Shown here one piece after another: positions 3,684-57,602 of a stretch of 64,000 nucleotides of DNA. The notes under the pieces are model-generated. The model was not told where the DNA came from. It saw nothing but the letters and a program-made list of their open reading frames with translations, and did no database searches. The stretch lies in the sequence record OR493421.1. One strand, given 5' to 3'. The translations under genes were made by a program, and so were the position numbers. Numbering within the stretch: position 1 is the stretch's first letter; each line of letters starts with the position of its first letter.

Positions 3684-5399
3684 TTAATTACTCGGAGCGA
3701 CGTCTACAACAACACCTGTGGTCGCCAATTGGAGTTCGGCCCCGTTCTCTGATTTCTGAATCCATTGCAGGAAGAGGGTTTGACCACTTGCAACAGGAGA
3801 AGTGAGAGCTTGAGGTTTATTCCAATCGTTGATTTCAAGGTCGTGAGTAACCCCGTTAGTGTCAACCAACCGGATATAGTTAGGAACCAGAGCAGCCGAT
3901 TCTTTCGTGGCATCGATCAACGGTTCTACCGGATAGTAGAGTCGATTCAACCAATCAGAAATCGTGAGGATGGAACCAGCCAGGTTAATGGACTGAACAC
4001 CATTGGCTTCGGTATACCCGACGTTATAAGCGACGTAAGGGTTATTCGCAGAAGAGTACTGGATAGCCCAACGACGACCCGTCCCGGTATTCGCTTTATA
4101 CAACGTAATAGAAGTATGTTGTACCAGCGTCCACGCTTTAAACGTCGAAGATACGTCTGACAGCGTCAGGTTAAACACCATGTCTTGCTGAACGCCATAG
4201 TTAGCCGGCTGGAAGGCTGGCGACGTGTCGTTGAGTGTAACATGCTGAGTAACGTCAGTTGCATACCCACGGGTAAGATCATACAGGTAATGCTTGAGCG
4301 AATACCCTGTTCCGTTCCACACTGGATACGTGTAGAGTTTTGGAGAGTAGGCGCCGTTAACCTGAGTACAAACGATCTGATACGTTTCCGATTTCATATT
4401 CGGATAGTTGGGTTCGGCAATTAGAGCTTGTTCATCTTCATCGAAAGAGTAACGAAGGGTGATCGATGCTCGTTGACCTACCGTAGTAGGTTTGTATTCA
4501 TTGAGCCCGATGATCGCACATTTGGTCCCGTCAATCAATTGCTCTTTGGTTGACCCATCGTTATAATGGATGCGCGCAGAGAATTGAACCGAGCTCATCG
4601 CAACGTTGATAGGAATGTTCAGCGTAGTAGGATCGGTCGTATCAGTGAACCAAGGAGAGATCAGTTCAATAGCCGAAACATACTTGATCCCGATCTGATG
4701 ATCTCTCAGCAACGCAGTGTGCATCACGCCAAGTTCATAAGGTTCAGGAATCATGTTACCGGCAGCATCGAAGAACACCAGCGTACACAAACTTCCGTCC
4801 GGGAGTTCGTCAGCCGTTTGAGTCACCGAAAACGCAGTAGTGGTGAAGATGCTGTGGTTGGTCATGTTGTTAACCGCAGCTAATTTAGTCGGGACCTGAT
4901 TAGAAATCAAATCACCGTTAGTCGCGTATTGAACAGAAATAACCTGGCCGGTATCACCGATAACCACGCCTTTATAAAGCAAGCCATAAGCTGCATCAGG
5001 AGCCCATACACGACCATCGATGACAGCCCGAGGAGGTCTGACACTGTAGTCGATTCCCAAAACACCATTGCCGGCAAAACGTCCCGGTAAACCAATGATG
5101 TCACTGGAGTTGTCGTCGCTATCCGTAACAAACCCTATCCGTTTTAACGTCGATTTGTATTTCGCATCTTCGGTCCCAACGTGAGTAATGACGTAAGCTC
5201 GTTGGTTCAATCCGTCTATGACCGTTTGGCCTTCACGACCAACGATGTATTTGGACGCATCAGAATCAGCTACCGTATCCGGATCGTAAAGGTTGGAAAT
5301 ATCGAGTGGGGTGAGTAGATCATTCGAGTTAGGTAACTGAGGACCCGTCGCCGCAACACTCGTACTTGATGTGGTCGATGTGGTGCTGGTATCAAACAT
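3684..5399 (-). CDS. virion structural protein (phiKZ gp26-like)
   Basis: 571-aa beta-rich ORF between terL and the gp27-like gene; synteny. Confidence 0.7.
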   Translation of the reverse strand: MFDTSTTSTTSSTSVAATGPQLPNSNDLLTPLDISNLYDPDTVADSDASKYIVGREGQTVIDGLNQRAYVITHVGTEDAKYKSTLKRIGFVTDSDDNSSDIIGLPGRFAGNGVLGIDYSVRPPRAVIDGRVWAPDAAYGLLYKGVVIGDTGQVISVQYATNGDLISNQVPTKLAAVNNMTNHSIFTTTAFSVTQTADELPDGSLCTLVFFDAAGNMIPEPYELGVMHTALLRDHQIGIKYVSAIELISPWFTDTTDPTTLNIPINVAMSSVQFSARIHYNDGSTKEQLIDGTKCAIIGLNEYKPTTVGQRASITLRYSFDEDEQALIAEPNYPNMKSETYQIVCTQVNGAYSPKLYTYPVWNGTGYSLKHYLYDLTRGYATDVTQHVTLNDTSPAFQPANYGVQQDMVFNLTLSDVSSTFKAWTLVQHTSITLYKANTGTGRRWAIQYSSANNPYVAYNVGYTEANGVQSINLAGSILTISDWLNRLYYPVEPLIDATKESAALVPNYIRLVDTNGVTHDLEINDWNKPQALTSPVASGQTLFLQWIQKSENGAELQLATTGVVVDVAPSN

Positions 5400-7995
5400 T
5401 ATTATTTACCTCAAAATATCCCTCTATGCCGCACGCGCTATTGAGATAGATTTCGTTAACCTGAGTGATGAAGAGTAACTGGGCGGTTGTTACAGTTTGC
5501 ATACCCGCCATGGAAAACGGATTGATTGTGTAATACCGCAAGTCGTATTTCAAGAAAGCCGGATCGTAATCAAGCAACCATTGATAATCTTTGGTTAGCT
5601 CATTGATTACCTGTTTACTGAATACCCCACCTGTGGTTGGTGCAGGGACGGTAATGATTTTCAGCAATATTGCGTTTACGATCTGATTCAGGAAAGGACT
5701 AAACAATCTGTATTTGTCGGAGATATTAGGCCAAACGACAGGGCCTGGCTTCTCACAATACGTTGTCAGGTAAGTGCAGATACGATTATCCAAATCCCTG
5801 TCTTCGGCGTACCGAGGATAGTTATTAAAATCCACCGCTTTTTGAACGGTCTGATAAACGTGCTTAACCTGATACGGGTAACCGTTGAGAGAATAACCGG
5901 CGTTCTGAGGGGCGTGTTGCTCTGAATCATCGATGCCATCAGATGGGAATAAGCGACCCGCAGCGATAAGCCTTGTGTCCCTTCCATCTCGGATATTGTA
6001 ACGTCCGTTAACCCCGATGGTTCCGCCGACGATATAACCCAATTCAGATTCTTCTACCGGTTGAGTCAAACTCGTACTGATCCCGAACGCAGCTACGACA
6101 AAATCATTTTCCCCACTCTCATTCAAATACATCTTGTTATTGATGAACACTCTAGGGTAATCCATCACGTAATCGACGTTAAGAATGAGGGGATGGCCAT
6201 TCATCCAAATGTAGATGTTAGCCGGTGCGATGTCCGCAGCTATCCCGCCGCCTTCCCATATTTCGGTAATGGCGAAATAAATAGAGTTGTCGAGATGCGA
6301 TAACGTGAAATCCTTGTAAAGGAAAACATCGTTAAAGATAACTCTACCTATCCGGTTCGTTGAGTCGTGGATCCAGGTAAGTGCGCCATTGGTAACGGTA
6401 TAGTCAGTACCCAATACTGCGGGCACCCATTTCCCGTCAGATTCCCCGGTAGACACTAACCGGCCAGATTGCAAAGCCAAATAAGACCAGTTTTTCAATA
6501 ATGTGACTGGATCGCTCCCAATCACTTGATGTCTGGTAATCGCCGGACTACCAGCGATGAACTCCACCATGGTGCAAGTCGGATTGGTCGGAGCATATTT
6601 CAGCGCATTAGTCAATGGGTAGTTATTAATGAGTAGACCGTCCGCATCGTACTCAAAAGCCACGCAAGCTTCTTGGAAACTAATCGGAACGTCATAACCG
6701 GCGTATCCTTCCACGTAGGGCATTGAAACTGGTGACGATGCTAAAGCCTGAGTCAGGGCATTAAACCCTAACGCTTTAACGATGTTCTCATCGGTCAGCT
6801 CTCCCCATTTCTGTCTGTTGATCAGCATGGAATAAGAATTTTCCAAACCACTGGCCGTCCATTCAGGTAGCGTGGAGTGGACCGCAGTCATTGCGTTGAT
6901 TATTCCATTATCATCAAGACGGTAAAGGTACCTGATTCGATTGGCTTCCCATACGAGATCGTGACTCCAGTTCGTGCTGCGATAAATCACCTGCAATTTC
7001 AGATCATCTCGATTCTTAAGATCTGTCAGGCTGTCAATAAGGGTCGCGACGTAATCGCTGCTCACGCTATAGTCGGCGTGAGTGAGTTGACGCAATGCAT
7101 CAGGGCTATTGATATTGAAATATAACCCTTTCCCGGTTGGGGTCGTGATGTAGATATCGCAATCGTCGAAATATCGGAACACCCAGTCGCCTTCAACCTT
7201 AGGGGGGTGAACGATGTATTTGCGCTTGCTATCCAAATCAGAATAGAAGTCCGGCAGAGTTTTCAAGTCGTAGTTATCGACTCTATAAACGGTCGGATCG
7301 TAGAAAATCTCTACGATGGTATTCGACGTAACAGCCGACGCCGTAGGAAGAGACGGACATTTTATTCCATCGACATAAATGGACGATAATCCACCTAAAC
7401 CACTCCACGTATTGAGTTGGGTTTGGAGCGCCGTGAGATTAGCCTGAGTTGGACCGACAAAACTGGTATACTGAAACCCGTTATTTTCGTCAGTTCCTTC
7501 TACCCCACGATAAATATCCCAATCAGGGGTATAGCACCGCAGATAGAAGTTATCGTTTAATGGGAGTGGGTAATTGGTTAAACGTTCCACACAAAGAAGG
7601 TGTGCTCCGTCATAAGTCCGCATGATCCACGCGCAATCTCTTGGATAGATTCTGCCGTCCGGGCGATAAAGTTCAATATAAACACCACGCTGATGGCTGA
7701 GCCAATCAACTCTCACCCAGGTATCAACTGGATTAGTTTTTATATTTTTGTTGATGAAGTTCCAGTACCCTAGCGAGGTACCACTAAGGGTGTAGACGTG
7801 ATGAGGGGTAGTAGAATCGGGTAATCCTCTCCCTTTACCCATATACGTAAAGGTATTGACCAACCCTACTGGGGGACTGATACGTTGTAGCTCCAGCCTG
7901 AATTGTTGATCGTTATAGGGAGACGACCACATATTGGACTCGGCGTAACGTATCAAGTCAGTTCTTGGTTGAACTAACGACACACTCATGTCCAT
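5392..7995 (-). CDS. virion structural / baseplate-associated protein (phiKZ gp27-like)
   Basis: 867 aa; size and position match the terL-sheath block. Confidence 0.7.
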   Translation of the reverse strand: MDMSVSLVQPRTDLIRYAESNMWSSPYNDQQFRLELQRISPPVGLVNTFTYMGKGRGLPDSTTPHHVYTLSGTSLGYWNFINKNIKTNPVDTWVRVDWLSHQRGVYIELYRPDGRIYPRDCAWIMRTYDGAHLLCVERLTNYPLPLNDNFYLRCYTPDWDIYRGVEGTDENNGFQYTSFVGPTQANLTALQTQLNTWSGLGGLSSIYVDGIKCPSLPTASAVTSNTIVEIFYDPTVYRVDNYDLKTLPDFYSDLDSKRKYIVHPPKVEGDWVFRYFDDCDIYITTPTGKGLYFNINSPDALRQLTHADYSVSSDYVATLIDSLTDLKNRDDLKLQVIYRSTNWSHDLVWEANRIRYLYRLDDNGIINAMTAVHSTLPEWTASGLENSYSMLINRQKWGELTDENIVKALGFNALTQALASSPVSMPYVEGYAGYDVPISFQEACVAFEYDADGLLINNYPLTNALKYAPTNPTCTMVEFIAGSPAITRHQVIGSDPVTLLKNWSYLALQSGRLVSTGESDGKWVPAVLGTDYTVTNGALTWIHDSTNRIGRVIFNDVFLYKDFTLSHLDNSIYFAITEIWEGGGIAADIAPANIYIWMNGHPLILNVDYVMDYPRVFINNKMYLNESGENDFVVAAFGISTSLTQPVEESELGYIVGGTIGVNGRYNIRDGRDTRLIAAGRLFPSDGIDDSEQHAPQNAGYSLNGYPYQVKHVYQTVQKAVDFNNYPRYAEDRDLDNRICTYLTTYCEKPGPVVWPNISDKYRLFSPFLNQIVNAILLKIITVPAPTTGGVFSKQVINELTKDYQWLLDYDPAFLKYDLRYYTINPFSMAGMQTVTTAQLLFITQVNEIYLNSACGIEGYFEVNNNV

Positions 7996-52788: not shown

Positions 52789-53046
52789 TCACATGAATAC
52801 AAAGAACAGAGCTCTAACCATCCCCCAGAGTGATGAAGGTTTTTTATCGTCTCTTATTGTTCTTTGCGGTGGGTTTGAGAAAGTGGGTAACTTTCGAAGA
52901 GGAATTTCACCAGTAACTGTTAGCTTAGTTCTGGCGTCGACAATTTCCCCCGAACGATCCAACTGAATCGGAGCGGAGGATGAATCGCTGTAATTATTAT
53001 GTTGTCTATTATTAGAATTTTTAATTGACGAAGTGTTAACGCCCAT
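52789..53046 (-). CDS. small disordered protein with hydrophobic C-terminus
   Basis: 85 aa Ser/Asn-rich, ending LWGMVRALFFVFM. Confidence 0.55.
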   Translation of the reverse strand: MGVNTSSIKNSNNRQHNNYSDSSSAPIQLDRSGEIVDARTKLTVTGEIPLRKLPTFSNPPQRTIRDDKKPSSLWGMVRALFFVFM

Positions 53047-53088
53047 AAAAATTCTCCCAATGGGGAAGTTTCCTTCCCCTAAAACGCA

Positions 53089-54666
53089 TCAGGGAATATC
53101 CGCACCACCTGCACGACTACCGATAATTAACGTATCGGTGCTCGCCAAAGAGATAGCAGTGCTGACACCAGCCCTTAACGCAGTGACTGTGGCTAACTGC
53201 GCATCCCAGACGTTGATGTCTTGAGGATGCTTACCGGTTTCCCCAGTAGCCAGATTGACATAGACTAATTCAGGATCATTGAATTCCCGACCCATCAACA
53301 TGTGAAGCTGCTCGCCCAATACATCGGCGTACAGTTTCACTATAGAATCGTCAGGATATTTCTTCACCAGCTCACTACCAACATAAGCCAATGAATAACC
53401 AATGCCCGGAAGGACGCCGTTAGTTAACGCTGATGCGATAGCCCGACCGACGTCTTCAAATCGATCCAGTCGTTCTTTGATGTCGGAAGCGGTTTCTCCT
53501 CCAACGGTTACAGTCACTCGGTTACCCATCAGAGTAGAGATACGGTGTCTCAGGATCTTCGCCAAAGGCGTGTGTTTCTGAGCAGCTGGCAAGTTATCGA
53601 TTTGATCTTTAATTTGCCCGATGCGCTTTACTGTGCGTTCCGAGACTTCATCAGATACACTACCCACGAAGAATGCCGCGCCCTTTACCGTAATGTTTTC
53701 AATACAGTGTACCTCATAGTCACGAGACTTCCAACCTAAATAGTCCACATCAGGACTTAACCCCAGTACGGTTGCAATATCTCCAATGATCCCCACTCCC
53801 GCTGTTCCGATAGCCTGAACCCGCACAGGAATGAAAACGGGTTCCTCCACCAGTTTCTGCTTCAGCATAACGTGATTCATTTTGTTCATCACCATCAGGG
53901 TGTGTTCGTCGAATTCACGTGCGATAACGATAGTCTGACGATATCCCCTTTTAGTGATCTCATCGAAGAGCTTCAGGAATTCCGACTCGTCATCTGGAAT
54001 ACTGAACTTCCCTTCAAAGATGCACGCATAACCCGATTCGATCGTAATCGGGCTTCCACTTCCATCTTTAGTGAAAGTAGGGTGCGCGTACCCGCCTGTG
54101 AATTCCTTGCCCTTACTGTATTCGATCTCGTCAATACCTGTTACGCCCCGACGATAATCAATCATGGGATCGGGTATGGTCTTAAAGATATCGTAGAGCT
54201 TATCCACGATATCCAGATCGTTATTACTGGTTGTTAACGCCAGATTGTGAAGTACCGGACTGTCAAGAGAAATAACCTTCGTCATTCCTTTGAGCATTTC
54301 GATCGTTTCTTTGGTTAACTCTTCCACCCGGCGTTTGGTCATGAAATCCAGTTTATCTTTAAAGGCGTTATAAAACGCTCTTGTTAAGAATACGGTGGTG
54401 GTGGTCCCATCGCCACATTCGGCATCCGTTTTGATTGAGGCTTCGGTGATCATCTTGGCGATGATGTCCATTGCGCGATCATCCAAACGGATAGAGCGCG
54501 CTACCGTCACCCCATCCTTGGTCATTTTAGGATTACCCGTTTCGTCAATAACAACCAGCTTGCCGTTAGGGCCCATGGTCGAGGTTACCGCGGTTGCAAC
54601 GAGCTCTACGGTGTTATCAATAATTTGACGGGTTTCTGCTTTTACTTTTACGCCACGAACGTTCAC
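53089..54666 (-). CDS. groL: GroEL-like phage chaperonin
   Basis: STMGPNG, KDGVTVA, GDGTTT, FEDV and GVLPG motifs; 525 aa; no GGM tail. Confidence 0.93.
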   Translation of the reverse strand: MNVRGVKVKAETRQIIDNTVELVATAVTSTMGPNGKLVVIDETGNPKMTKDGVTVARSIRLDDRAMDIIAKMITEASIKTDAECGDGTTTTVFLTRAFYNAFKDKLDFMTKRRVEELTKETIEMLKGMTKVISLDSPVLHNLALTTSNNDLDIVDKLYDIFKTIPDPMIDYRRGVTGIDEIEYSKGKEFTGGYAHPTFTKDGSGSPITIESGYACIFEGKFSIPDDESEFLKLFDEITKRGYRQTIVIAREFDEHTLMVMNKMNHVMLKQKLVEEPVFIPVRVQAIGTAGVGIIGDIATVLGLSPDVDYLGWKSRDYEVHCIENITVKGAAFFVGSVSDEVSERTVKRIGQIKDQIDNLPAAQKHTPLAKILRHRISTLMGNRVTVTVGGETASDIKERLDRFEDVGRAIASALTNGVLPGIGYSLAYVGSELVKKYPDDSIVKLYADVLGEQLHMLMGREFNDPELVYVNLATGETGKHPQDINVWDAQLATVTALRAGVSTAISLASTDTLIIGSRAGGADIP

Positions 54667-54756: not shown

Positions 54757-55215
54757 TTAAATAACCCAGTTAAATTGTTCCGGTTGCATCGCCTTAAGTC
54801 TTTTAGAGACTGTTAATAAATCAAACATTTTGTACTCCCGACCTGATTTGTTTAGCAGGGCTTGGAATTCGTCAAAGGTACAGTTATAGTGATAGAAAGC
54901 GGCCTTAGCGACGTGCATGTTGTTACAGTAGTCGGAGTCTCCCCCTGTTTGAAAGGCTTTTAACAAATTAGAGGGTAACGGAATACGACGATCGAGACTT
55001 AACGTTTTATAGTTGAAAAGCGTACTGTAACAAACACCGTGCTCATTCACTGAGATAGCGGAAGATAACGTACTGTCGTTATTTTCATGAAAGGGAATGA
55101 AAGCCCATCGTTTGTCACCATCCAATAAGAACTCGACGTGAGGAGTATTGTCCTCTAACATAAAGATGTTCGCTACGCTGTCGACGATAACCCGCTTGTT
55201 AAGATAAAAGAGCAT
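54757..55215 (-). CDS. hypothetical protein, possible degenerate Ntn-hydrolase fold
   Basis: YLNKRVIVDS and AFQTGG...VAKAAF loosely follow HslV-like patterns; no N-terminal Thr. Confidence 0.5.
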   Translation of the reverse strand: MLFYLNKRVIVDSVANIFMLEDNTPHVEFLLDGDKRWAFIPFHENNDSTLSSAISVNEHGVCYSTLFNYKTLSLDRRIPLPSNLLKAFQTGGDSDYCNNMHVAKAAFYHYNCTFDEFQALLNKSGREYKMFDLLTVSKRLKAMQPEQFNWVI

Positions 55216-55756
55216 TTTTAATTTCCTTTTTGGTAGCTTTCTTAATAAGAGTGAGGTCTTTTTGATGGATCACATCAACTTCATTTTCATCGGTGTGGAG
55301 AATGAGATTGGCTTCCATCAGTGCTTGACGAATTACTTCCCCTGGGAGATCGAGACCGGCGACCATATGGTTGTTTAAAAAAGGATAGGTGACCGCGCCA
55401 TCCAAACGAATTTGAACTTCTAAAACACCCTGTTTTTCATTTAACTGAATTGAGTAAAAATGTCTCGCGGATATGACGATGAGTGGATCGCAGGATTTAA
55501 GACTACAATGAATAAATTCGTCTTCCTTTACCAGACCTTTTTCGAATCTGAGTAAATAGTTAAGAACCAATGGAACGATCTCTTCTTTTTGTTCGCCACA
55601 GAAGACATAACAAAAATGATTGTCAGGAGATATTTTTAGTTTACTTTCGGTGTAGCGTGAAACCGAAGATACTGTTTTGTTGATCTGCTTGTAATCCAGT
55701 ATATAACGGTCCGCACTTAACGATTTTTCTTTTACAACCCCTACGATAATGGTCAT
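55199..55756 (-). CDS. HslV/proteasome-beta-like Ntn-fold protein
   Basis: M-T-I-I-V-G start, SAD, K and FCG at HslV-like spacing; LPGEVIRQALMEA resembles HslV LSAREIAEKALDIA. Confidence 0.6.
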   Translation of the reverse strand: MTIIVGVVKEKSLSADRYILDYKQINKTVSSVSRYTESKLKISPDNHFCYVFCGEQKEEIVPLVLNYLLRFEKGLVKEDEFIHCSLKSCDPLIVISARHFYSIQLNEKQGVLEVQIRLDGAVTYPFLNNHMVAGLDLPGEVIRQALMEANLILHTDENEVDVIHQKDLTLIKKATKKEIKNALLS

Positions 55757-55788: not shown

Positions 55789-55812
55789 GTGGGAGCCCTT
55801 GCGGACTCCCAC
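55789..55812. terminator. putative terminator
   Basis: gtgggag...ctcccac hairpin with adjacent A-tract. Confidence 0.6.
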
Positions 55813-56281: not shown

Positions 56282-56722
56282 TTAAATACTCCTTTTACGA
56301 AAGGCACTAAAGTCAGACATTAGCACCAGACCTTTGATTTCAGTACAACGATAAACGGAATGTCTAAAATCAAATATCCCTCGCATGTTAATGGTGATAG
56401 GCTGATACCGATTGATGGTATCTTCCAGTATTTTGCGCATTCTTCCTTCGGGTCGAAGCGTACCGGTGACTTTGAAATCTAGGGGGTTGATCCTTATATT
56501 AGTAACGGACCCGCAGATATTTACTGGTGAATCTTTATCACTCAGACCTCGATAAAGTTCGAGTTTGATAGCGGGATTTTTCTTGACCCACTCAAACACG
56601 ATTTTCTGCTCTATTTCAAACGTCGAAAAAGAAAATAGCGTTACCTCTACTGCATCACCTACCCTCTCATAACGATCGTTGATATAAGCTGTGTTACGAT
56701 AAATATTTCTGTCTTCCCGCAT
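56282..56722 (-). CDS. hypothetical protein resembling an inactive T4 gp21-type protease domain
   Basis: LELYRG...PVNI...VTGTLRPEG...INMRG; start set at MREDRN behind AAGGA. Confidence 0.55.
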   Translation of the reverse strand: MREDRNIYRNTAYINDRYERVGDAVEVTLFSFSTFEIEQKIVFEWVKKNPAIKLELYRGLSDKDSPVNICGSVTNIRINPLDFKVTGTLRPEGRMRKILEDTINRYQPITINMRGIFDFRHSVYRCTEIKGLVLMSDFSAFRKRSI

Positions 56723-56734
56723 TTCACTTTCCTT

Positions 56735-56759
56735 AAAAAAGGAGGGCCCGAAGGCCCCC
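56735..56759 (-). terminator. intrinsic terminator with cUUCGg tetraloop
   Basis: Minus strand GGGGGCC-UUCG-GGCCCUCC-UUUUUU. Confidence 0.85.
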
Positions 56760-56786
56760 AAAATAACTACCACAACTACACAGCAA

Positions 56787-57164
56787 TTAGATTTCGATAA
56801 CGACAATTTCGGTATCGGGGATGTCCCGCAGGTACTCTGCTAAGAGAGCGGCCTCCCGAGTACCATGATCGGAAAGATCGCGACATACGGATTCAATGCA
56901 TTCAGGCGAGAAATAGTAAATGGCGGAGCACATGCAAATGCCGGAGTCAAAACGTCCTTCCCATTTCGTTTCCAGGATATCCAAAGCAGAGACGGGTAAT
57001 CTGAATTCTTGACCTTCAATGCAACCCTCCCTGGAACCTAGTGCCATTTCAATGTCTTCGATGTCGGTAACCCAACCTTCGTTCTTAGTCAGGTCCTCGA
57101 AGAAATCCTGATCTTTCTCTTCCAGTTCTTGTCTGGAACAATGATAAACAGTAACATCGTACAT
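56787..57164 (-). CDS. hypothetical acidic protein (paralogue of 57603..58001)
   Basis: 125 aa; shared motifs listed in findings. Confidence 0.75.
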   Translation of the reverse strand: MYDVTVYHCSRQELEEKDQDFFEDLTKNEGWVTDIEDIEMALGSREGCIEGQEFRLPVSALDILETKWEGRFDSGICMCSAIYYFSPECIESVCRDLSDHGTREAALLAEYLRDIPDTEIVVIEI

Positions 57165-57176
57165 GATAGACTTCCT

Positions 57177-57587
57177 TTAAGCATATTGAACGACAAGATG
57201 GTGGGTGGAGTAATTGATTTTAGTCCTTACAGAAAATAACGTGTTCAAAACGAATTGTTTTTCATCCCTTCCCCATCCGGACCAAGTACGAGAAAAATCG
57301 GTGAATTCAATTAAATCATTTTCACTAAACCACATGGAGAATGGGATTTCCACATCCTTTATAGAAGAACAAAGTTTTTTATCGACGATCCAGTCCAAAA
57401 GGCAATAAACAATATTGGACGTTCCTGAGAATTGAAAGATCTCCGGTCTAACTTCCTTGTCGTGAGAAAACACCCGTAACCAAATAAGTTCGTCAAGGAT
57501 GTCATCGAACTTATTGTCGGGAAAGGGATACACCTTATCCGCTTCAGGAACCCTTTTAATTTTGTTGAAAGACAATCTTGTTCCCAT
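57177..57587 (-). CDS. hypothetical protein
   Basis: 136 aa, AGGAG RBS. Confidence 0.75.
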   Translation of the reverse strand: MGTRLSFNKIKRVPEADKVYPFPDNKFDDILDELIWLRVFSHDKEVRPEIFQFSGTSNIVYCLLDWIVDKKLCSSIKDVEIPFSMWFSENDLIEFTDFSRTWSGWGRDEKQFVLNTLFSVRTKINYSTHHLVVQYA

Positions 57588-57602
57588 GATTATCTCCTAA
57601 AG

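Follow-up and report, generated by a model that had tools for sequence, protein, structure and literature searches.

Proteases of the N-terminal nucleophile (Ntn) type use a threonine that is exposed once the initiator methionine has been removed, and methionine aminopeptidase prefers a small residue at position 2. Homologues of the proteasome and of HslV are already known from phages, none of them with an assigned role. Two of these families, PPH and RPC, are compact, phage-associated proteasome homologues of Group I (HslV-like), and they are the only described proteasome homologues without helix H2 (PMC8665760). PPH has about 140 amino acids (aa), and RPC, which is PPH-like with a C-terminal extension, has been reported only from proteobacteria (PMC8665760). 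In the survey of Fuchs, Alva and Lupas (2021), the new homologue families showed neither a conserved gene context nor an AAA+ partner, within a family whose functions are diverse and include that of the ligase connectase (PMC8665760). ORF116 of Salmonella phage pSal-SNUABM-04 is called HslV by its authors (PMC7823757) and in the note of its record, and the HslU-like gp116 of Erwinia phage RAY localised with phage DNA (bioRxiv 10.1101/2023.02.24.529968). Here we analyze two overlapping open reading frames (ORFs), ORF-A and ORF-B, in a stretch of 64,000 nucleotides (nt) from record OR493421.1, the Klebsiella jumbo phage YC1 (252.5 kb) of the Miami group; we call the whole stretch the window. Both ORFs are labelled hypothetical protein in all deposited records. 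A preliminary description of this DNA had placed the two minus-strand ORFs directly upstream of a GroEL homologue, which the ORF positions bear out (Table 1), and had read them as tandem HslV-like genes. As judged from sequence comparison and structural modelling, ORF-A is a real, very divergent Ntn hydrolase of the HslV/proteasome-beta branch, and ORF-B is a constant partner without detectable relation to it.

The evidence for ORF-A starts with its conserved residues. An exhaustive HMMER search of metagenomes finds 26 relatives of 169–193 aa with expectation values (E) down to 1e-96, and the family alignment holds 29 sequences with identities to ORF-A down to 22%. Conservation of Thr2 had been proposed as a check on the assignment, and the alignment has Thr (18 members) or Ser (11 members) at this position in 29/29. 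Asp16, Lys39, Glu72, Tyr101, Leu168 and Ile171 are invariant, and we take Asp16 and Lys39 for the equivalents of Asp17 and Lys33 of the HslV/proteasome-beta family. The features that had first suggested HslV (the start M-T-I-I-V-G, the AD of Asp16, Lys39 and FCG) are all there, and across 29 members they are not chance. The candidate catalytic triad would then be Thr2 (residue 1 after loss of the methionine), Asp16 and Lys39, where we infer the removal of the methionine from the preference of methionine aminopeptidase. All 29 members also carry a Lys-rich C-terminal tail (net charge +1 to +7) right after the invariant L-x-x-I; in ORF-A it is encoded in positions 55199-55240, and nucleic-acid binding, partner docking or localisation are possibilities for its role.

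An AlphaFold2 model of ORF-A calculated on the 29 sequences has a predicted local distance difference test score (pLDDT) of 92.5 and a predicted template modelling score (pTM) of 0.87. An earlier run on 6 close sequences had reached a pLDDT of 54, and the Foldseek matches of that model to HslV, with E of about 0.1, were a lead only. When the model on 29 sequences is compared to the PDB using Foldseek, each of the top 50 matches is to HslV, BPH or a subunit of the 20S proteasome (E from 2e-4, probabilities of 0.93-1.00), and HslV is the closest solved structure. The model has the four-layer alpha-beta-beta-alpha sandwich of Ntn hydrolases with its S1-S11 beta core, it matches Ntn folds in two structure aligners, and its residue 2 is paired with the first chain residue of HslV, Anbu, BPH and connectase. 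The preliminary description had named two outcomes that would speak against its proposal, a predicted structure other than the Ntn sandwich and a position 2 that varies among homologues; the fold match and the conserved position 2 are the opposite of both. The likeness that it saw between a C-terminal helix and the LSAREIA of HslV is consistent with helix 139-149 of the model, in a hhalign register of low confidence. Among the models in BFVD, close matches to ORF-A are limited to its orthologues in the Miami group and in RisingSun, with template modelling (TM) scores of 0.88-0.95. The same fold is found there also in the Moabite 'ATP-dependent protease subunit', the CcrBL9 'proteasome subunit beta', and in Special G and Noxifer.

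The link of ORF-A to HslV by sequence goes through another phage. The profile of the A family matches ORF116 of pSal-SNUABM-04 over 147 columns (hhalign probability 93%, E 2.9e-7), in an alignment that places A-D-R on A-D-R, E-x-K-I on E-D-A-K-I, and the variable x-N of the family on the G-S-G of ORF116. ORF116 matches phrog_1040 'peptidase HslV family' (E 7.5e-10), and so does the HslV of E. coli (E 2.6e-21). By this chain, the ORF-A family is a branch of the HslV-like proteins of phages that has diverged further and lacks annotation; the sole PHROG match of ORF-A itself is phrog_36648, of unknown function. A tblastn search of the phage collection with E. coli HslV reports host-like fragments only. 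Several records of that collection that include a canonical hslVU (among them AGRM01000004.1, AFYI01000005.1, and several named 'Listeria phage LM') resemble fragments of bacterial chromosomes, and for that reason we do not consider the HslV and HslU matches in them to be phage genes.

The second element of the locus is the linkage between the two ORFs. In 13/13 contexts examined, the A homologue is directly followed by a B-type ORF that abuts or overlaps it. The A-B contexts are the window, RisingSun, and the loci L114, L116, L117, L118, L120, L121, L122, L135, L137 and L138, and they also include two truncated contigs, L115 and L136. The ORFs that follow A have 147-160 aa. When the ORF-B of the window is compared using jackhmmer to a background of 528 ORFs (all ORFs of the A-B loci and of the window), only ORFs following A are found, those of the seven loci L114, L117, L120, L135, RisingSun, L137 and L116. 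The B of L138 joins through the reverse search, by its link to the B of L117, and the ORFs in the B position of L118, L121 and L122 are equivalents by position only. Searches of Pfam, NCBIfam and PDB sequences with ORF-B give nothing relevant, a word search with the B alignment adds zero new members, and a pattern scan of IMG/VR with the A alignment adds zero confirmed loci. Neither Asp nor Lys nor any other polar residue is conserved in the B alignment, and from its sequence ORF-B looks non-enzymatic.

The third element is a chaperonin. The product of the gene that follows ORF-B matches phrog_5725 'chaperonin groEL' over residues 6-518 (E 2.9e-125), the NCBIfam GroEL models over residues 6-435 (E about 1e-44, below their trusted cut-offs) and the Pfam family Cpn60_TCP1 (E 6e-19); by these matches it is a divergent phage chaperonin. 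A gene of the Cpn60 family lies at most two genes downstream of A-B in 5/11 informative contexts (the window, L114, L116, L122 and L137), and the A tree puts these five cases all into the same half, which is weakly supported.

Finally, the genomes of YC1 and Miami also code for a homologue of HslU. Gp072 of Miami (L124:754-2094), annotated 'ATP-dependent protease', has 446 aa and aligns over its full length (residues 9-420) with E. coli HslU at 26% identity (E 1e-25); it matches TIGR00390 with E 3e-33, which is below the trusted cut-off. Its AAA+ module comes in two parts (58-109 and 250-325), a division like the one made by the I-domain of HslU. The orthologue in YC1 is at positions 4438-5775 of the record (L130), outside the window, and is annotated 'hypothetical'. 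Both belong to an HslU-family ATPase that is common in Erwinia, Salmonella and Klebsiella jumbo phages. The link to proteostasis genes that had been suggested for this locus is plausible, given the chaperonin in 5/11 contexts and the HslU homologue in the same phage. A different AAA+ gene, of 340 aa, stands right after A-B at L135:6026-7048; it is a single case, with a generic Walker-A match only, and is not HslU-like.

What would such a locus do? We think it probable that ORF-A is catalytically competent as an HslV-like peptidase and is made together with an accessory protein, ORF-B, and that in the Miami-type phages the chaperonin is co-expressed with them and the phage HslU serves the peptidase. 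In this mechanism, removal of the methionine would turn Thr2 into the N-terminal nucleophile, and Asp16 and Lys39 would complete a triad of the proteasome type. ORF-A is most likely a peptidase, an activity that we infer, and it would assemble into rings that use a phage or a host HslU. ORF-A and ORF-B would be translated together, and ORF-B would most likely bind ORF-A as a subunit that regulates it, gates it or selects its substrates. In Miami-type phages, the A-B pair and the phage chaperonin appear to be one transcription unit, and the phage HslU homologue, encoded far off, would most likely be the unfoldase for ORF-A. The sum would be a phage-built HslUV-like degradation system beside a phage folding machine. 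Because the unrelated partner is constant and the chaperonin is frequent, we take the locus for a candidate phage-built degradation module, and not for tandem copies of HslV.

A number of results weigh against the reading of ORF-A as an HslV-like peptidase in such a module. At the level of sequence, PF00227 has no match at E<=1 in any of the 29 members or anywhere in the genomes of Miami and RisingSun, Pfam and NCBIfam searches with ORF-A give nothing relevant, and a sequence and profile search of the PDB gives no match to HslV. A direct hhalign comparison between the A family and an alignment of 30 HslV sequences, assembled from diverse genomes of the phylum of the E. coli locus, is not significant, and thus the sequence link to HslV rests on the ORF116 bridge. 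At the level of structure, the TM-scores of the ORF-A model to HslV are low (0.45-0.51), and S4 and S5 of the model have just one helix (58-72) between them, from which it follows that H2 is missing. The G-S-G of the Ser129 region is in none of the 29 members, which have a variable x-N or S-P segment there; the preliminary description had already cautioned that it saw no evident G-S-G, rightly so by the alignment. Because G-S-G and helix H2 are both absent, the activity or the specificity of ORF-A may differ from those of HslV.

The same is true of the proposed partners. The phage HslU gene is distant from the A-B pair, and the C-terminal tail of its product is unlike the tail with which E. 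coli HslU docks on HslV. In RisingSun, an HslU homologue is not detected despite the A-B pair, and for the same reason RisingSun and Joad need another partner or none. Co-occurrence with chaperonin genes had been proposed as a check; a chaperonin lies next to the pair in the five contexts named above and does not in the other 6/11 (L118, L120, L121, L135, L138 and RisingSun, in which the chaperonin is about 20 kb from the A-B pair). Moreover, adjacency to a chaperonin is not significantly clustered on the A tree. Given these two observations, the link to the chaperonin is real but partial, and it may be inherited gene order. As for expression, in public RNA libraries the region is covered by fragmentary contigs only, and since DNA carry-over is possible as well, they are no evidence of expression.

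We have weighed these results against four other explanations. One is close to the preliminary description, which had proposed an active-plus-inactive, beta/alpha-like pair: A and B would be a diverged tandem duplicate, an active beta-like A and an inactive alpha-like B, both with the Ntn fold and forming hetero-oligomeric rings. The two proteins are indeed similar in size, B always comes after A and is translationally coupled to it, the N-terminus of the B proteins is hydrophobic and strand-like (M-I/L-I/V), and Ntn folds of about 140 aa exist (PPH). For the ORF-B of the window, the ESM Atlas also lists clusters of the Ntn clan (PF03417 and PF02275) at 0.90, which is the noise boundary of the tool; a rerun with the divergent B of L120 gives clusters of beta-propeller glycosidases, below 0.9. 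We do not count this hint, because of its noise-level score and because it failed to recur. Against a duplication, BLASTP between ORF-A and ORF-B gives E 0.76, hhalign gives probabilities of 0.2-0.3% between the B and A profiles, and of 0.1-1.1% once the comparisons of the B profile to pSal ORF116 and to the HslV alignment are included. No equivalent of the catalytic Asp or Lys, or of the Gly, is conserved in B. The claim that the second ORF shares the HslV-like pattern is therefore not upheld by these comparisons, nor is the pair built on it: with no relation of ORF-B to ORF-A or HslV detected, "tandem HslV-like genes" overstates the sequence evidence, and we consider a duplication to be quite improbable. 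It could also be asked whether the two open frames arose by chance, or whether modelling produced the fold match as an artefact, as the poor initial model on 6 sequences and the lack of Pfam and NCBIfam matches might suggest. This possibility is effectively refuted by conservation, namely by the 26 metagenomic relatives and the conserved gene order and Shine-Dalgarno sites; the agreement of two independent structure aligners and the BFVD models of the orthologues argue against it as well.

The other two explanations accept ORF-A as an Ntn hydrolase and differ on its partner. In one of them, ORF-A acts with the HslU of the host, either by hijacking it or as an HslV mimic that titrates it, and ORF-B is an adaptor or inhibitor, an idea that draws on the A-B pairs of RisingSun and Joad with no detectable phage HslU, on HslV as the closest solved structure, and on the HslUV encoded by enterobacterial hosts. 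That the nucleophile, Asp and Lys are strictly conserved favours catalysis over a passive decoy, and the Miami-type phages carry an HslU homologue of their own, so we give this explanation only a small chance. On the other hand, ORF-A could be an Ntn enzyme independent of any ATPase, comparable to BPH, Anbu or connectase: a specific processing peptidase, a ligase or an amidase. ORF-B would then be a substrate, an inhibitor or a specificity factor for it, and the adjacency to the chaperonin nothing more than inherited gene order. The absence of an AAA+ partner in the survey of Fuchs et al. and the functional diversity that they describe, including connectase (PMC8665760), are in line with this, and so are the missing G-S-G and H2, the family-specific Lys-rich tail, and a co-occurrence with HslU that is not strict. 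The sole sequence bridge, in contrast, goes to the phage HslV family, and an HslU homologue is encoded in the same genome; an ATPase-independent enzyme is in our view unlikely.

We prefer, then, the HslV-like peptidase with an accessory ORF-B. A more specific proposal is that ORF-A and ORF-B are an undescribed two-component proteasome-like machine of jumbo phages, in which B, non-catalytic and fast-evolving, gates or targets a minimal peptidase of the HslV type, functionally coupled to the chaperonin (and to HslU where it is present). We regard it as a rather doubtful extension. If it were true, the machine would provide a private fold-or-degrade triage, for example to clear host defence proteins or misfolded virion components.

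The features of the region, together with the two loci used for comparison below, are collected in Table 1.

Table 1. Coordinates of the features discussed. Positions are those of the window unless a locus is given.
Feature	Position	Strand	Remarks
Terminator-like hairpin	55789..55812	-	Between the upstream helix-turn-helix (HTH) gene and ORF-A; pattern scan, consensus match only
ORF-A	55199..55756	-	185 aa; predicted divergent HslV/proteasome-beta-type Ntn hydrolase
ORF-B	54757..55215	-	152 aa; conserved, fast-evolving partner gene
GroEL-like chaperonin	53089..54666	-	525 aa; next gene downstream of ORF-B
Weak terminator-like hairpin and T-run	53054..53068	-	Just past the chaperonin stop codon; 5-bp stem
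pSal-SNUABM-04 HslV-like ORF116 and ORF117	L139 181-1253
Special G HslU-like gp118 and two 179-aa ORFs	L140 2944-5755

ORF-A and ORF-B overlap by 17 nt, with the ATG of ORF-B within the final codons of ORF-A. Shine-Dalgarno sequences are found before both, AGGA before the ATG of ORF-A and AAGGA 8 nt before that of ORF-B. The upstream hairpin has a 10-bp stem with 7 G-C pairs, followed by a T-rich run, and is probably the 5' boundary of the transcription unit of ORF-A. The weaker one past the chaperonin may mark the 3' end of a unit of A, B and the chaperonin; the Miami record places its annotated terminator elsewhere, past the next small ORF after the chaperonin. As pattern matches only, the two flanking hairpins fit such a unit, and terminator-like sites are no more numerous in the region than expected from shuffling.

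Other observations concern the neighbourhood. Directly after the chaperonin there is an 85-aa ORF at 52789-53046 (minus strand), whose position and length are kept in Miami (gp206) and also, at 7432-7689, in L114, a relative with 62% identity. Upstream, a 174-aa ORF at 56282-56806 (minus strand) has a weak local match over residues 94-144 to phrog_7478 'head maturation protease' (E 1e-5). A contig of the RNA-labelled metagenome library X17 joins position 57167 to 57595, with 427 nt swapped for 6 other letters, and this junction points to a natural variant without the 136-aa ORF at 57177-57587. The region is 90-97.5% identical to Miami, KPN8, phiKp_32, BUCTxx100 and VB_ZK_P1, and Miami is named in a paper on chimallin-encoding, nucleus-forming phages. 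BUCTxx100 is deposited as 'Stenotrophomonas phage BUCTxx100' (OR529409.1) and is 95.6% identical over a 4.2-kb query, a surprising host label among Klebsiella phages.

In a collection of 50,697 phage records, the ORF-A family is found only in seven Miami-group genomes and in RisingSun and Joad; the remaining members come from metagenomes, in which their contigs reach 250 kb. How does this family compare with the systems already described? Bacterial HslV (ClpQ; MEROPS T1B; PF00227) also lacks a propeptide and starts with M-T, shares the Thr/Ser-Asp-Lys triad at a similar spacing, has a similar length (about 175-185 aa), and goes with an HslU, of which the phage genome with ORF-A has a homologue too. 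Unlike HslV, the ORF-A family has neither a significant direct similarity to HslV, nor G-S-G, nor (in the model) H2; it replaces the Thr nucleophile by Ser in 11/29 members; it has the Lys-rich tail after the invariant L-x-x-I, to which nothing in HslV is comparable; and it is tied to an obligate downstream partner gene, while not being next to hslU.

Among the jumbo-phage proteins recognisable as HslV-like by sequence, pSal ORF116 shares the M-T start, A-D-R and E-x-K-I with the ORF-A family, but it retains G-S-G and matches phrog_1040, whereas the ORF-A family belongs to the separate phrog_36648 and has no G-S-G. ORF116 is overlapped by ORF117 (182 aa), and the HslU-like ORF121 comes five genes on. 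By profile, ORF117 has no detectable relation to ORF-B. Two 179-aa ORFs come after the HslU-like gp118 of Special G; profile comparison relates them neither to A nor to B, and ORF-B has no similarity to Special G gp119 or gp120. The layout of a peptidase plus a small next ORF may be general among jumbo phages.

PPH and RPC resemble the ORF-A model in the absence of H2, and the C-terminal extension of RPC may be set beside the tail of ORF-A, a likeness by description only. PPH is shorter, about 140 aa versus 169-193 aa in the ORF-A family, and PPH and RPC are without conserved gene context, whereas ORF-A has an invariant partner gene. Proteasome and HslV homologues in phages are thus not new; what is new is a variant that standard models do not detect, without G-S-G and H2, with a Lys-rich tail and tied to a partner. 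The ORF-A family gives testable partners for a phage proteasome-like enzyme. RAY gp116 and its kin are ATPases, whereas ORF-A is a candidate peptidase, and it is as such a candidate for the missing half of the "orphan" HslU-like ATPases of jumbo phages.

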